From sequence record NC_019538.1: a DNA stretch of 64,000 nucleotides; one strand, given 5' to 3'. This document shows, one piece after another, positions 1-40,068 of the stretch. Positions within the stretch are counted from its first letter, which is position 1; every line of letters starts with the position of its first letter. The position numbers and the translations under genes are program-made. The notes beneath the pieces were generated by a model. The model saw only the letters and a list, made by a program, of their open reading frames with translations. It made no database searches and had not been told where the DNA came from.

Positions 1-1996
1 TGATCAAATATACTGGTGGAATATCAACCATCGTACCCCCATTGAAATTGAAGGTGTATTTGTTGTTTTTAACCCATGATATAGTAGGTTTCTCACTAAT
101 TATATCTGGGTCAGTATAACAATCAACATCAAATTTAAGGTTTGTCATATTACCGGCAGATATCCAATTCACGCCATCTTTTCTAAAGAAGAACATGTGT
201 CTAGGCTGTAGTCCCTGTGCTGATTGTCTTTCTGCAATAACCTCATATCTTTTGTTCATTTCAATACCGGTATTCAACGTAGCACCGTTATTTTCAACTA
301 TGGTAACATAAGCCTTAGAACCGGTTTTCATTCCTGCTGGGATTAGTTGACTTCCGATGCCGCAATATAGCCAACCACCACCCGCATCCGGTGTGATATT
401 GGAACCGGAATAATAAACACCACTAGCCGGAGAAGACCCTTTAATAAAAGGTAGTTTTTCTGATTGTGGATATTCATAATACCTTGAATTATTTGGTATC
501 TCATAATCTTCATACTCCGAAGATATGATATACCCACTCATTTCAGATCCAACTCGAATTTCTTCAAACTCTCGTCTTGCTAAGTCTTCTATTGTTGTAC
601 TTCCAACTAAAACCCCGTTGACATAAAACTTCATACTTGGGCTATCAATTTCCAACTTATACAAATATTCTTTATTACAAGAAATGATTTCATTCGTGGT
701 AATCGTTTTTCCAGCATAAGTAACAATATGACCCATACCGGTAGGATGAGTCTTTGTTGTCATACCAATGAAAATAGTATCATCGGATCCAGATCCAACC
801 CGGTTTACCGGTACGTTAGTATCTGTATAAACCATTGATATAAAATAAGAAAATTTCTTACCGACTACCAATTTAGGGTCTTTTATATATTTTCCATCAT
901 TATAAGTGAAGTGAGGAAAACTAACATTTTCTAAATTACCATATTCAAATGCCGTAATATTTTTCTCTTTAATTCTACCTACAATATCCCCACTGGTTTC
1001 TATCGCATCTTCTGTAATAAAACCCCATTGACCAATAGAAGCAGTTCCGGATTTAACAACTACCGGTTTTTTCCTGAATACGGATACCGTGCGAACCCCA
1101 GTAGTACCAACATATTGGGATTTAACGGGCCATGACGTAGCATATACGGTTAATCTATCTATTGTGGTTGGAACAACAAAATCGTTATAAACAAAATCCC
1201 ACTGCCCAGACGTATCAAGAGAACTGACATATCCGGAAGTTACGGAAGTATTTCCGTTGTATCCAATATAATATAGTCTTATTGATTCACCTGCCGCAGC
1301 CGCAAGGTCGTCCCTATACGTCTCTAGAGTGAATCTGAGGGTTTCCCCCCAATTAACCACCATATCAGATATAAGGGTTTTATTCATGAATGTTTTGAAT
1401 TCCGCTGTTTTTGATTTTGCGTTTATATATTCCTGTTGGTCTGAGATGATATTGTTTCCATATCCAACAACACCAATATCATTGAACGTATCAAAAACAA
1501 CTTCTAGAGAAACATTTATAAACGAACTAACCCCAAATTGTTCTACCATAATCTTTTTGAGACCACAGTCATATATTGCAGCGTATCGGGTGTTCTGTGT
1601 GTTTGTTGATGGATTCCAATGATTTGACCAACCAATACATCCAATCTTTTTGAAATAGTTGTTGATTGATGTAGTTGTTATGTTTTCACCATGAGAGATC
1701 ATTAGAATAATCCCACTACCAATGGAATTGATCCAACCTTCAAACCGATTTACGTCAGTTTGATTCTTAAAATTAAAAACGTCTCTGATTCCAACACTAA
1801 GGTCGTTGTTTATACTGATGCACTCAAGACCGTCTATTTCGACTGGGTTGATTGAGTATCCATTGATAGACGCAATTTTATTTTGAGTGTCTGTTTTTGG
1901 GGATATCTTGATCTGATTTAATCCAGAAAAGTTCTCTGATAATTTATTAGACTTGATACCACCGTTTGAAATACTTGATATAACAAGTTCGGCCAT
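1..1996 (-). CDS. 35: long tail fibre hinge connector gp35 with C-terminal extension; 3' end runs off the window
   Basis: Not in the ORF track. Read by hand: ATG at 1996 with AGGGG SD, open for 665 codons to position 2. RYAAIYD, LEVVFDTFNDIGVVGY and GQWDFVYNDFVVPTTIDRLTVYA align with T4 gp35. Lies directly downstream of gene 34. Confidence 0.85.
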   Translation of the reverse strand, partial: MAELVISSISNGGIKSNKLSENFSGLNQIKISPKTDTQNKIASINGYSINPVEIDGLECISINNDLSVGIRDVFNFKNQTDVNRFEGWINSIGSGIILMISHGENITTTSINNYFKKIGCIGWSNHWNPSTNTQNTRYAAIYDCGLKKIMVEQFGVSSFINVSLEVVFDTFNDIGVVGYGNNIISDQQEYINAKSKTAEFKTFMNKTLISDMVVNWGETLRFTLETYRDDLAAAAGESIRLYYIGYNGNTSVTSGYVSSLDTSGQWDFVYNDFVVPTTIDRLTVYATSWPVKSQYVGTTGVRTVSVFRKKPVVVKSGTASIGQWGFITEDAIETSGDIVGRIKEKNITAFEYGNLENVSFPHFTYNDGKYIKDPKLVVGKKFSYFISMVYTDTNVPVNRVGSGSDDTIFIGMTTKTHPTGMGHIVTYAGKTITTNEIISCNKEYLYKLEIDSPSMKFYVNGVLVGSTTIEDLARREFEEIRVGSEMSGYIISSEYEDYEIPNNSRYYEYPQSEKLPFIKGSSPASGVYYSGSNITPDAGGGWLYCGIGSQLIPAGMKTGSKAYVTIVENNGATLNTGIEMNKRYEVIAERQSAQGLQPRHMFFFRKDGVNWISAGNMTNLKFDVDCYTDPDIISEKPTISWVKNNKYTFNFNGGTMVDIPPVYLI

Positions 1997-7308: not shown

Positions 7309-7970
7309 TTAAACTAATTCTCCCTCCAAAACCAATGATTACGATTGATGGGAGAAGCTGTTATCGCCTTTATAGGTCTTTAAAGACCCAATTTTCGAAC
7401 CCTAAATATCAGGTGGTTAAAGGTGGTGATTGGAAACTCCTAAATACATCGGAAGCAACCTATAATAAAATGGCTCGAAAGCACATTTACGAAAGGTTGG
7501 CGAAGAAATATAATCTGGGTACTCTCTGTGGTATAATGATCACGAATCTGTGTTCTAATCCGGATATGTGGGGTGGTGAATTCGGTGGTGAAGACGCCCA
7601 CGATCATTACTTAAAAACTACCGGTAAATATGAGAGAATGAGTATAGTCTTTAAGAAAGAAATTCAAGACTTACTCAGGAAATCAAAATCAAAAGGTGTA
7701 TCGTTCCGTGATATGATACTACCGACTGATGGTCAACCTTGGTTATTTAAATACGTCCAACAAGACGTTATTAGTTATGAAACGATGTTGCTTTTGGATT
7801 CATTATTCAATTTCATTGATTCGTATGATAAATTAAACGACCATGTTTGGCAGAACGGTTATTCTAGCCGTATCAAAGCTTATCGTAGCTTAGTTAAAAT
7901 AGATAAAGAAAAAGTAAGAAAACATTTCAAAAAAATAATCGAAGATTACAAAGAACTAAACAATATCTAA
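7305..7970 (+). CDS. 59: helicase loader gp59
   Basis: MIKLILPP, YERLAKKYNL, SYETMLLLDS; synteny. Confidence 0.93.
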   Translation: MIKLILPPKPMITIDGRSCYRLYRSLKTQFSNPKYQVVKGGDWKLLNTSEATYNKMARKHIYERLAKKYNLGTLCGIMITNLCSNPDMWGGEFGGEDAHDHYLKTTGKYERMSIVFKKEIQDLLRKSKSKGVSFRDMILPTDGQPWLFKYVQQDVISYETMLLLDSLFNFIDSYDKLNDHVWQNGYSSRIKAYRSLVKIDKEKVRKHFKKIIEDYKELNNI

Positions 7971-7994
7971 AAATAATCCAAAGGAAAATAAAAT

Positions 7995-8966
7995 ATGTCT
8001 ACTGCATTTGTTCGTCGTAAAAAAGACCCGTCCGCCCTGCAAGCTCAACTGGAAGCTGTATCTAACAAAGGTGGTTTCCAACAAGACCTGACTGAATGGA
8101 AACTGACTGTTGATAAGAAAACCAAAGAAGGCTCCGCTATCATTCGTTTCCTGCAACCTAGTGATCTGGAAGGTATGGAAGATTGGCCCACCATCGTGAC
8201 CATCTCTAACCACTTTGTAGAGCGCGGTGGTAAGTACTACGTAGAAAACTGTACCGGTGGTACTCACAAGAATTACGACGGCTGCCCTGTGTGTCAATGG
8301 CGTAATGCTCAAGGTTGGGACTGGTCTAGCGAAGCTGATAAGAAAGCTGCTCGTGAAACTGGAACCAGTATCAATACCAACTACTGGGCTAACATCATGG
8401 TCATCAAAGACCCGGCTAACCCAGATAATGAAGGTAAAGTATTCAAATACCGTTTTGGTGTTACCATCCTGAAAATGATTCAAGCCGCTGCCGCTGGTGA
8501 TGAGGAAATGGGTGAAGCCAAGATTACCGTTACTGATCTGGACGAAGGCGCTAACTTCCTGCTCCGTTCTACCAAGAAGAACGAAAAGAATGGTACTCTG
8601 GAAACTTCCAAGTTCCAGCCGGTTGGTCCTCTTCCGGGTATTGAAAAGCCGGAAGTTCAGAAGGCAATTCTGGAAGGTATGCAGGATCTGCGTAAGATTG
8701 TAGCTGCTGACCAATTCAAGCCCTATGATGAACTCAAGAAGAAGTTTGATACTATTATGGGTGTTCGTGGTTCTACTGCTTCTGCAAAGAAAGCTGATCA
8801 AGAACTCGATTCATTCGAAGCAGATATGAAAAACTTCGAAGCAAGCACCACTTCCAAACAGGAAGTAAAGAAAGATGATACCGACGAACTGGCTAAAGCT
8901 GTGTCAGAAAGTGTAGGTTCCTCTGATGGTGATGACGACCTAGACGCTCTGTTGGCTGGTCTGTAA
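7995..8966 (+). CDS. 32: single-stranded DNA-binding protein gp32
   Basis: EWKL..D....GSAIIRFL, zinc ligands H..ENC..CPVC, YWANIMVIKDPANPDNEGKVFKYRFG, acidic tail DDDLDALLAGL. Confidence 0.97.
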   Translation: MSTAFVRRKKDPSALQAQLEAVSNKGGFQQDLTEWKLTVDKKTKEGSAIIRFLQPSDLEGMEDWPTIVTISNHFVERGGKYYVENCTGGTHKNYDGCPVCQWRNAQGWDWSSEADKKAARETGTSINTNYWANIMVIKDPANPDNEGKVFKYRFGVTILKMIQAAAAGDEEMGEAKITVTDLDEGANFLLRSTKKNEKNGTLETSKFQPVGPLPGIEKPEVQKAILEGMQDLRKIVAADQFKPYDELKKKFDTIMGVRGSTASAKKADQELDSFEADMKNFEASTTSKQEVKKDDTDELAKAVSESVGSSDGDDDLDALLAGL

Positions 8967-23316: not shown

Positions 23317-23538
23317 ATGGAATACAATTTCATCGAAGTTAATGAAAATATTTTTGTTCTTACTGGATATTTCGGATCTTATAATTTGATTGAGAGATGG
23401 AAAAGACTTGAAGAAGATGACCATTTAATGATCGTGAAGATAAAGGAATATTTGGAGAGGGGAAATATTGTGGTTGTACATGATGTACAAGAAGATTTAT
23501 TCGTTAAGCTAGATGGAGATAAATTTTACGTTTTTTGA
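23317..23538 (+). CDS. small hypothetical protein (late promoter upstream)
   Basis: 73 aa; AAGGGTG SD; CCCTAAATA at 23270-78. Confidence 0.6.
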   Translation: MEYNFIEVNENIFVLTGYFGSYNLIERWKRLEEDDHLMIVKIKEYLERGNIVVVHDVQEDLFVKLDGDKFYVF

Positions 23539-23584
23539 TTTCGTATTGTATCAGACACTACGAATGTTTTTAACTTTTATACTT

Positions 23585-23609
23585 AGGTGATCTCTCGATC
23601 ACCTTTTTT
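23585..23609 (+). terminator. rho-independent terminator
   Basis: AGGTGATC-tctc-GATCACCT-TTTTT. Confidence 0.7.
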
Positions 23610-23642
23610 GTATCTTTTATATACAAAAATAATTAGTTTCAC

Positions 23643-23671
23643 TTGCAATCAAAGTATAAAATCTCTATAAG
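23643..23671 (+). promoter_or_regulatory. sigma70-type promoter
   Basis: TTGCAA-17 nt-TATAAG. Confidence 0.65.
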
Positions 23672-23683
23672 TATTTATATAGA

Positions 23684-23753
23684 AGATCTATAATTAGAAA
23701 GTGTGAGCGAAGCGAACAGGCGGCTACGCCGTCTCACTACGTTCGAGATCTAT
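23684..23753. other. GC-rich structured non-coding element in AT-rich flanks (candidate origin or ssDNA signal)
   Basis: AGATCTAT direct repeats at 23684 and 23746 bracket GCGAAGC (+ strand), GCGTAGC and ACGTAGT (- strand) triloop motifs and a GGCG-GCTA-CGCC stem. Confidence 0.5.
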
Positions 23754-23791
23754 TTATTTATAATGCTATTTAGGTGTGTTAAAATACTATC

Positions 23792-24352
23792 ATGAAAAGG
23801 AAAATTGTAACTCTTATAGGAACCAGATATCCTAATGAAGAGTATAAACAGTTGATGATAAGAATTGGAAAAGCTTTTTCGGATCGTGGTTATGGTGCTA
23901 GGTCTGGTGGTGCCATTGGTTCTGATACACTTTTCCTAACCGAATATGACCCAACATTAACCATTGTATATCGTCCTGATGATAGACCCGGTTGTGTTAA
24001 TGTCAAAAACCATGAAAACTATTATGAATTTGAATTGCTTGCTTCCCGTGTTCATGGGTCTGGAGTTGGCTGGGAATTTATGCCAATCGGTCACCAAGAA
24101 TTACACGCTCGGAACGTTCCTCAAGTTATGGGATTAAACCTCAAGTCTTATTCTGACTTAGTTGTATTTTGTGCAGAGGAATCGATACATGGTACTGTAT
24201 CTGGTGGAACTGCTACTGCGGTTAAAATAGCAAGAAGCCTAAATATACCTACCCTAAACATTATGAACCCAGTTCAAAGATCAAAACTTTGTAAATGGTT
24301 GGGTATTGATGATATACCAGTATTAGAAAAGGTTGACATTTTCAATCTCTAA
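23792..24352 (+). CDS. stand-alone SLOG-superfamily (DprA/Smf/YspA-like Rossmann fold) protein
   Basis: LIGTR..., RSGGAIGSD, LHARN..QVMG, SDLVVF, SGGTATAVKIA...IP..N. Confidence 0.75.
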   Translation: MKRKIVTLIGTRYPNEEYKQLMIRIGKAFSDRGYGARSGGAIGSDTLFLTEYDPTLTIVYRPDDRPGCVNVKNHENYYEFELLASRVHGSGVGWEFMPIGHQELHARNVPQVMGLNLKSYSDLVVFCAEESIHGTVSGGTATAVKIARSLNIPTLNIMNPVQRSKLCKWLGIDDIPVLEKVDIFNL

Positions 24353-24390
24353 ATATTGTTGTGGAATAATAACAATAAACGAGGTTGAAA

Positions 24391-27859: not shown

Positions 27860-27896
27860 TTTTGTTTTCCTTTTTGGATTTGAAATTTAATTTTCG

Positions 27897-27970
27897 GGGA
27901 GAAGAACCATTTCTTCTTTCCCTTACAAATATATTTAGGGGAGTTATTTCAGTTATTTTTATAACTCCCC
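27897..27970 (-). promoter_or_regulatory. gene 23 late promoter, overlapping upstream hairpin and 5'-UTR stem-loop
   Basis: CCCCTAAATA at 27932-41; GGGGAGTTAT...ATAACTCCCC repeat; leader stem GGGA(A)AGAAGAA-ATGG-TTCTTCTCCCC. Confidence 0.7.
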
Positions 27971-39877: not shown

Positions 39878-39911
39878 AAAAGCCCCGAACGAATAAACGA
39901 ACGGGGCTTTT
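39878..39911. terminator. terminator hairpin at the end of the wac operon
   Basis: AAAAGCCCCG ... CGGGGCTTTT. Confidence 0.7.
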
Positions 39912-39913
39912 AA

Positions 39914-40057
39914 TTATTGTTCTTTATTTTTGTTAGCCTCTTTATCTTCTTCATTCTGCTTCTGTTTTTTGGTGATTGCTTCCGCCGCCACCTTAAGCAA
40001 CTGAGTTAGAATTTCGAGACCTATTGTCCTAAAGAATAAAAGTACAGCGGTTTGCAT
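39914..40057 (-). CDS. small amphipathic/charged peptide (47 aa)
   Basis: Read by hand: MQTAVLLFFRTIGLEILTQLLKVAAEAITKKQKQNEEDKEANKNKEQ; AAGGGG SD. Confidence 0.6.
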   Translation of the reverse strand: MQTAVLLFFRTIGLEILTQLLKVAAEAITKKQKQNEEDKEANKNKEQ

Positions 40058-40068
40058 TTTAATGCCCC

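Follow-up and report, generated by a model that had tools for sequence, protein, structure and literature searches.

A six-copy cassette of promoter, easily melted DNA and hairpin-forming island in Aeromonas phage CC2 and its relatives: a candidate family of replication origins

The locus and its features

The DNA analysed was a stretch of 64,000 nt (the window) from the genome of Aeromonas phage CC2 (NC_019538, 231,743 bp; genome positions 124,001–188,000), a T4-like phage classified as Straboviridae, Emmerichvirinae, Ceceduovirus. The element under study is a cassette of a predicted promoter and a GC-rich island with hairpin motifs, which lies in a 253-nt gap free of open reading frames (ORFs; gap 23539–23791; positions refer to the window unless marked as CC2 genome). 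The gap extends from the stop codon of a 73-aa ORF (23317–23538) to the ATG of a SLOG gene (186 aa, 23792–24352; annotated as DprA-like, with a weak Pfam DprA match at E = 0.0013), after which a gene with a RyR domain follows. A first-pass annotation, made from the letters alone, had called this the only large intergenic gap; it is the largest ORF-free gap of the window, but a further one of 159 nt exists at 39910–40068.

Every motif that had been listed for the gap was recovered (Table 1). The terminator at 23585 is present as a hairpin (23585–23604) followed by a T-run and is the sole terminator-like site of the region (1 found, 0.2 expected); the orthologous hairpin of phage 65 has a different sequence. 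All three parts of the TTGCAA-17-TATAAG promoter at 23643 were found, and the GC island, with its triloop motifs and alternative pairings, occupies 23703–23745, i.e. 43 nt and not the 45 nt given. It holds GCGAAGC (23707–23713), GCTACGC (GC-GTA-GC on the − strand) and ACTACGT (AC-GTA-GT on the − strand), together with a central CGGC-TAC-GCCG stem and the GTGAG/CTCAC and CGAAC/GTTCG complements. Both AGATCTAT repeats said to bracket the island exist, but the second is specific to site and lineage, being present at three of the six CC2 sites described below and absent from the phage-65 group; it is possibly a recombination or insertion scar.

Table 1 Features of the gap upstream of the SLOG gene (positions in the window)
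Feature	Position	Strand	Remarks
Intrinsic terminator of the upstream 73-aa gene	23585..23609	+	8-bp stem and T-run; outside the repeated cassette
Module P, conserved AT-rich quasi-dyad with promoter	23634..23700	+	six copies 95–100% identical; 27 distinct copies aligned
Sigma-70-like promoter	23643..23671	+	−35 TTGCAA 23643–23648, 17-nt spacer, −10 TATAAG 23666–23671; predicted from sequence
Least stable 50-bp duplex of the region	23651..23700	.	nearest-neighbour duplex energy; property expected of a DNA unwinding element
First AGATCTAT, within P	23684..23691	+	overlaps the second TATAAT; conserved in CC2-type P
Second TATAAT box	23689..23694	+	23 nt downstream of the first −10; kept in 23 of 27 distinct copies, both genera
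Hairpin M, GTGA-GC-GAA-GC-GAAC	23703..23717	+	G-C, T-A, tandem G.A/A.G, G-C, C-G, GNA triloop
Central GC hairpin, CGGC-TAC-GCCG	23721..23731	.	4–5 bp stem, variable triloop; stem flips to CGCC/GGCG
Hairpin M2, CGAAC-GTA-GTGAG	23733..23745	−	C-G, tandem G.A/A.G, A-T, C-G, GNA triloop
Second AGATCTAT	23746..23753	+	directly after the island
CCTAAATA box	23767..23774	−	matches the apparent late consensus of the phage; directed leftwards into the cassette; outside the repeat

Six copies at fixed sites

The 120-nt element (23634–23753) was matched five further times in the CC2 genome (E values 1e-19 to 1e-55), and for the 35-nt core of the island 0 matches are expected in shuffles. A profile search of the genome returned exactly six copies, with weaker or decayed ones absent. 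The single special locus implied by the first-pass annotation was therefore wrong: the element in the window lies at 147.7 kb and is copy four of six near-identical 115-bp cassettes, the others being located at 32.1 kb (−), 81.0 kb (+), 122.1 kb (−), 189.9 kb (−) and 219.9 kb (−) of the CC2 genome. Four copies are 96–100% identical and two 82–85%, with unrelated flanks in all cases. Each cassette consists of two modules, P (67 bp, an AT-rich dyad with the promoter) and the 43-bp GC island, joined by a linker whose length differs by 0–9 nt among close relatives.

When conservation and covariation were checked in relatives, the element was found at the same six sites and its local hairpins showed compensatory changes (see below). 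The cassette family is carried by phages of both genera, Ceceduovirus and Ishigurovirus: by translated flank comparison, phage 65, avDM6, Aswh_1, AS-zj and AsSzw2 have their copies at these six sites, and five further complete genomes gave exactly six matches apiece, with flanks that agree with these sites. In all, the set of six sites was seen in eleven usable relatives. As the sites are orthologous across two genera, their positions are older than the genus split. The deposited AS-zj and AsSzw2 genomes contain N's and short deletions exactly within the cassettes, probably through assembly collapse of the repeat, and such copies were left out of the evidence; among the usable genomes examined there were no extra, missing or decayed copies.

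Copies are more alike within one genome than between orthologous sites, and the −10 types are lineage-wide, every phage-65 and avDM6 copy having TATAAT along with two one-base deletions and every CC2 and Aswh_1 copy having TATAAG; the copies therefore evolve in concert. Between CC2 and Aswh_1, P is ~95% identical, against 74.5% for the adjacent gene region. Contigs of four independent public DNA runs end at the cassette, with a 7–12-fold depth, which confirms a multi-copy repeat in wild relatives; contig breaks of this kind carry no information on expression or replication. Among the sequencing runs searched, no RNA run containing the phage was found. In the contigs of the DNA runs, a ‘joint’ of 367 nt between 23264 and 23632 was not trusted, as only 24 letters stood behind it.

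In IMG/VR, a looser pattern returned random matches only, and the exact P pattern was found only in phage 65, AS-zj and one 16-kb metagenome virus. In the JGI metagenomes it was present on four short contigs, three of them phage-65-like and one with the pattern but not the rest of P. The island pattern did not occur in 185,579 bacterial species genomes, save two unrelated matches, and searches of the literature on phages CC2 and 65 and their genera yielded no description of the repeat. The metagenome virus (IMGVR_UViG_3300005046_000023), an otherwise unrelated viral contig, carries P inside a 1.2-kb non-coding region (7350–8550) with a perfect 28-nt inverted repeat of M plus hairpin on both sides of P; three ATGACACTAT iterons and two TTCCGAAyAATATTCGATTT repeats are located in the same region. 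The genes downstream of it include an Ant-like anti-repressor.

Module P: predicted promoter and duplex stability

P is built from three TCTATAA-like repeats in the order direct, inverted, direct, and each copy matched itself on the reverse strand in the profile search. The predicted promoter keeps the pattern nTGnAA, 16–18 nt spacer, TATAnn in three lineages, the −10 box being TATAAG in copies of the CC2 type, TATAAT without any mismatch in those of the phage-65 type and TATAGT in the metagenome relative. The pair in the window was omitted by a consensus scanner because TATAAG lacks the final T. The second TATAAT box could be a second promoter or a pause element. In place of the first AGATCTAT, P of the phage-65 type has AACTCTAT or AACTTTAT.

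By nearest-neighbour energies, the six P cores rank 1–5 and 10 for lowest 50-bp duplex stability among all distinct loci of the 231.7-kb CC2 genome, and this instability is unmatched by any other CC2 promoter region. In phage 65, avDM6 and Aswh_1 the P core is the least stable 50-mer at 17 of 17 loci, despite ~20% divergence of P. The purine fraction of the predicted transcript (0.55–0.68 over 40 nt) is unremarkable.

The GC island: support for three local hairpins

Structure models were compared on an alignment of 11 distinct islands. With three local hairpins (M, the central GC hairpin and M2), 93.8% of the cells were paired, five pairs were changed on both sides, at least one of them in each helix, and the covariation score was 0.298 vs. 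0.137 in shuffled alignments, 0 of 500 shuffles being as high. Two other models were rejected. A pseudoknot of GTGAG/CTCAC with CGAAC/GTTCG paired 94.8% of the cells with a score of 0.134 (shuffled 0.076) and no two-sided change outside the central hairpin; a nested long stem paired 91.6% with a score of 0.173 (shuffled 0.114), had one pair broken in 6 of the 11 islands and showed two-sided changes only in the central hairpin. Covariation supports the three predicted local hairpins, not the pseudoknot or the long stem.

Hairpin M, which contains the d(GCGAAGC) mini-hairpin, shows compensatory changes from C-G to T-A in 6 of 11 sequences and from G-C to A-T in 1 of 11. Its variants GCGTAGC, GTGAAAC and ATGAG...GAAT all keep pairing; the closing pairs and the GNA loop are kept throughout GCGAAGC, GCGTAGC and GTGAAAC, and at site 6 of phage 65 and avDM6 the hairpin has one extra base pair. 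The central hairpin was seen with the loops TAC, GAA, TCC, TAG, TTC, AAA, TGC and TTT. M2 (hairpin 3), which in phage 65 and avDM6 shows a compensatory A-T to G-C change (pair 39–45) at the orthologous site, is stable when read on the − strand only, since its G.A positions are pyrimidine–pyrimidine mismatches on the + strand. On either DNA strand, a purine-rich GNA hairpin therefore comes first and the central GC hairpin second.

When the island, P and the entire cassette were folded by energy (RNA and DNA, both strands), no thermodynamic signal was obtained (z −0.3 to −2.0). The stability of mini-hairpins is missed by conventional parameters (2026 review, PMC13037366). According to the same review, the DNA forms of GNA mini-hairpins greatly exceed the RNA forms in stability, and mini-hairpin motifs occur at the G4 origin, RSF1010 ssiA and the N4 hairpin promoters (PMC13037366).

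Orientation and spacing of the cassettes

Four CC2 cassettes are co-directional with the neighbouring genes, and two are antisense to them. These are site 2, within the group of genes adjoining alc, and site 5, which separates gp54 from gp26; at both, the flank order is unchanged in other genera. In Aswh_1 and ZPAH1, P at site 3 has the reverse orientation at an unchanged position and points away from the island. The site-4 island of Aswh_1 is the exact reverse complement of its site-1 and site-5 islands, and all four arrangements of the island halves occur. Site 5 of phage 65 (gp54–gp26) holds two convergent P modules, 70 nt apart; between them were observed two GC hairpins with triloops, GGGC-TTT-GCCC and GCGCC-AAA-GGCG, and what may be a short ORF, which starts ATGAAAATC. 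A domain search of the CC2 genome gave no match to Resolvase, Phage_integrase or Y1_Tnp.

The gaps between sites measure 25.6–49.0 kb. Compared with random points, the probability was 0.004 for the minimum gap and 0.001 for the variance, and when six of 13 large ORF-free gaps were drawn at random it was 0.0036. The even spacing was also found in phage 65, Aswh_1 and five further relatives. A GC skew peak near the site in the window was discounted, since it tracks a switch in gene orientation.

Just upstream of the site-2 cassette, three unrelated DNA versions were seen among phages that are otherwise 96–97% identical (P19, AS-yj, Asswx_1 and G2 vs. CC2 genome 80980–81140), and in P19 the downstream flank differs too. 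From these differing flanks in close CC2-like phages it follows that genes were swapped at the cassette borders. The remaining five sites are syntenic by flank comparison.

Late-type boxes and neighbouring genes

TATAAATA, the T4 late consensus, had been reported twice on the − strand. The copy at 23755–23762 was placed correctly, the other lies at 23672–23679 and not at 23671–23678. Both are probably not late promoters here, since the late genes of CC2 carry CTAAATA, which was found upstream of gp23 (e.g. window 27870–27960), gp24 (twice), gp22, inh and gp26, the last having its own CTAAATA outside P. TATAAATA is moreover rare in the CC2 genome (20 copies vs. ~35 expected, six of them within P), the copies outside P appear to lie mostly inside coding DNA, and its role as late promoter was rejected. 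The convergent late box reported at 23767 is present as CCTAAATA; both genera have an invariant TATTTAG core here, and a late-type box facing the cassette occurs at the site in the window and at none of the others. No − strand gene lies to the left of this box; alternatively, it could form part of the region where the SLOG gene starts on the + strand.

An AsiA anti-sigma homologue is encoded at CC2 genome 215646–215873 (E = 8e-23). In relatives from two public runs, ~1,006 additional bases lie between the SLOG and RyR-domain genes (window 24356–24361), as an insertion or extra gene that CC2 is without. At the left end of the window (1–1996) lies part of a gene annotated as gp35, the long tail fibre connector (CC2 genome 122217–125996), which encodes 1,259 aa; the label may be wrong, because this is the size of T4 gp34 and not of gp35.

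Interpretation

The features together fit a cis-acting DNA site better than the leader of a single gene, because a meltable promoter, hairpins on both strands, six spread and fixed sites, indifference to gene orientation, sequence constraint and the absence of decayed copies are combined in one element. A leader or non-coding RNA (ncRNA) dedicated to the SLOG gene, as one of the first-pass readings had it, is unlikely: the family has six copies beside unrelated genes, two of them antisense to their neighbours, and at one Aswh_1/ZPAH1 site the promoter is directed away from the island. The other first-pass reading, an R-loop or primosome origin, stands as a candidate and draws support from the six fixed sites, the even spacing, the lowest duplex stability and the hairpins on both strands. 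We lean, tentatively and at somewhat less than an even chance, to the view that the cassettes are a sequence-defined family of six transcription-primed replication origins, each of promoter, unwinding element and single-strand hairpins, in Emmerichvirinae Aeromonas phages.

The following course of events is inferred from the anatomy. Host RNA polymerase would fire from P early in infection, and the transcript would remain base-paired within the unwinding-prone segment, forming an R-loop of the kind known from T4 oriF and oriG, and prime the leading strand. The exposed strands would fold into SSB-resistant mini-hairpins, which would mark helicase–primase entry or priming sites on both strands, in the manner of ssiA and ssiB, of which RSF1010 oriV carries one on each strand. 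The six copies, with their even spacing, would be the origin set of the phage, and at four sites P would also serve the downstream gene. The occurrence of P in the unrelated metagenome contig would then point to an origin cassette that is portable.

In T4, at least five origins are dispersed over 169 kb; the minimal origins of ~100 bp combine a promoter with an A+T-rich unwinding element, oriE comprises an early promoter and iterons, and no common sequence motif is found among the T4 origins (PMC3016281). The cassettes resemble T4 oriF (uvsY), oriG (34) and oriE in this ~100-bp build, in being dispersed in several copies per genome and in having a promoter that may serve a gene. They differ from them in that the six CC2 copies are 82–100% alike, whereas the T4 origins share no sequence, in that P has no MotA box, whereas oriF and oriG are MotA-dependent (middle mode), and in the cluster of GC mini-hairpins, none of which has been described at T4 origins. 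RSF1010 oriV, in turn, has one ssi signal per strand, beside an AT-rich region and iterons. With ssiA/ssiB of this origin and with the complementary-strand origin of phage G4 the cassettes have in common short single-stranded DNA hairpins with GNA/GNNA mini-hairpins (PMC13037366); unlike in those signals, the hairpins are only 13–15 nt long, and neither sequence similarity to them nor a dedicated primase or initiator was identified.

Several points weigh against replication origins. As T4 origins share no motif, a repeated origin family is without precedent in T4 relatives. Neither MotA domain was detected in the CC2 genome, in a search without positive control, and P carries no MotA box; P is therefore probably not a T4-type middle-mode origin promoter, and middle transcription in the CC2 phage group may differ from that of T4. 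The CC2-type −10 box TATAAG is without the conserved final T, and the extreme AT-richness of P would also fit a very strong promoter. At site 1, a Shine–Dalgarno sequence and start codon follow 13–25 nt after the island in all genera, as for a plain promoter and leader. Given orthologous sites and a test made post hoc, the spacing counts in effect as a single observation, the covariation draws on few independent events among related, concertedly evolving sequences, and standard folding energies of the island are no better than those of shuffles (z −0.4 to −1.4). T4-type primase is not known to depend on single-strand initiation signals.

The strongest competitor, which we regard as doubtful though well worth keeping in view, is a cassette like the promoter-early stem-loops (PeSLs). 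On this reading P would simply act as a promoter, early and very strong, and the island as either an attenuator or a 5′ leader whose structure serves mRNA stability or insulation; recombination would keep the repeats alike, and they would double as linkers for modular gene exchange. Such a linker role has been described for RB49/phi1, T4/PST and KVP40/nt-1, and PeSLs are documented in T4-type phages, with PeSL-like sequences in Aeromonas phages too (Arbiol 2010, Comeau 2014; PMC2839356, PMC4122927). The cassettes resemble them as follows: a repeated intergenic promoter with sigma-70-like boxes, conserved in three lineages, is combined with AT-rich DNA and a GC stem-loop, and copies are alike. 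Gene replacement at the borders was seen in close CC2-like phages at site 2, the other five sites being syntenic. The co-direction of four of the six CC2 copies with the downstream gene and the translation start closely after the site-1 island are likewise what a leader would show, and at site 4 the order of terminator, then promoter mimics the PeSL layout. The PeSL stem-loop, however, is a terminating one upstream of the promoter, whereas the three-hairpin island has no T-run, lies on either side in either orientation and is found downstream of P or where P points away. PeSLs are also numerous (dozens of copies), variable and clustered in hyperplastic regions, whereas the cassettes occupy six fixed, evenly spaced sites, two of them antisense to their neighbours in all genera. 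One hairpin is stable only on the non-transcribed strand, and no other promoter of the genome approaches the low duplex stability of P. Replication origins and a PeSL-like cassette are not mutually exclusive, because T4 origin promoters also express genes.

Some other DNA-level cis site that is needed in few, evenly spread copies is improbable. A TCTATAA-dyad site for a regulator or DNA-organising protein, a recombination or topoisomerase entry site, or a clamp-loading site for late transcription would be examples. Fixed, evenly spaced sites, their independence of orientation, the dyad and iteron-like structure of P, its much better conservation than that of neighbouring coding DNA and the absence of decayed copies would all be explained in this way, but a simple protein-binding site predicts neither conserved promoter geometry nor hairpin covariation, and no candidate binding protein was identified.

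There is still less to be said for small ncRNA genes or a cis-regulatory RNA (riboswitch, pseudoknot or antitermination leader) transcribed from P, which we consider very unlikely. The promoter is followed by a 43-nt GC-rich segment whose complementary 5-mers would allow a pseudoknot or an imperfect stem of 14 bp, and at site 5 the gp54 terminator hairpin after the island could end a transcript of ~110 nt, but a terminator common to the copies is not present and the long-range helices are without covariation. An Rfam scan of 23400–23900 (E up to 10) gave eukaryotic snoRNA-type noise only, the best E value being 0.26, far under gathering scores. The spacing from P to the island varies by 0–9 nt among close relatives, and the island occurs inverted relative to P, in four arrangements of its halves and at one site not downstream of P.

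A selfish miniature mobile element (MITE, REP or IS200-type hairpin element) or a programmed invertible promoter switch is hardly credible: the dispersed, near-identical copies with unrelated flanks, the 8-bp direct repeat AGATCTAT on both sides of the island at three sites, the occurrence of both modules in both orientations, the inverted repeats that flank P in the metagenome relative and the likeness to REP/BIME elements with RAYT (~40-nt GC-rich imperfect palindromes, intergenic, in both orientations) are outweighed by six sites common to two genera with no extra, missing or decayed copies in usable genomes, by a copy number of only six, always beside P, by a genome without serine or tyrosine recombinase or Y1 transposase, by the absence of the island pattern from bacterial genomes apart from the two unrelated matches and, for the switch, by CC2 copies with the island on one side only, flanking inverted repeats being found only in the metagenome relative.

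Implications

How T4-type phages choose where replication starts is largely unknown, and of the at least five origins of T4 only two are understood. If the cassettes are origins, the T4 superfamily would have in them its first origin family that is both repeated and recognisable, its other origins being idiosyncratic and little understood, and the conserved 115-bp cassette is a defined sequence open to cloning, mutation, plasmid-replication and two-dimensional gel assays. If they are only promoter cassettes, they would represent a PeSL-like element of different build with fixed positions, which would still be informative and would bear on how repeats are kept identical, in both orientations, in a highly recombinogenic genome without scrambling it.

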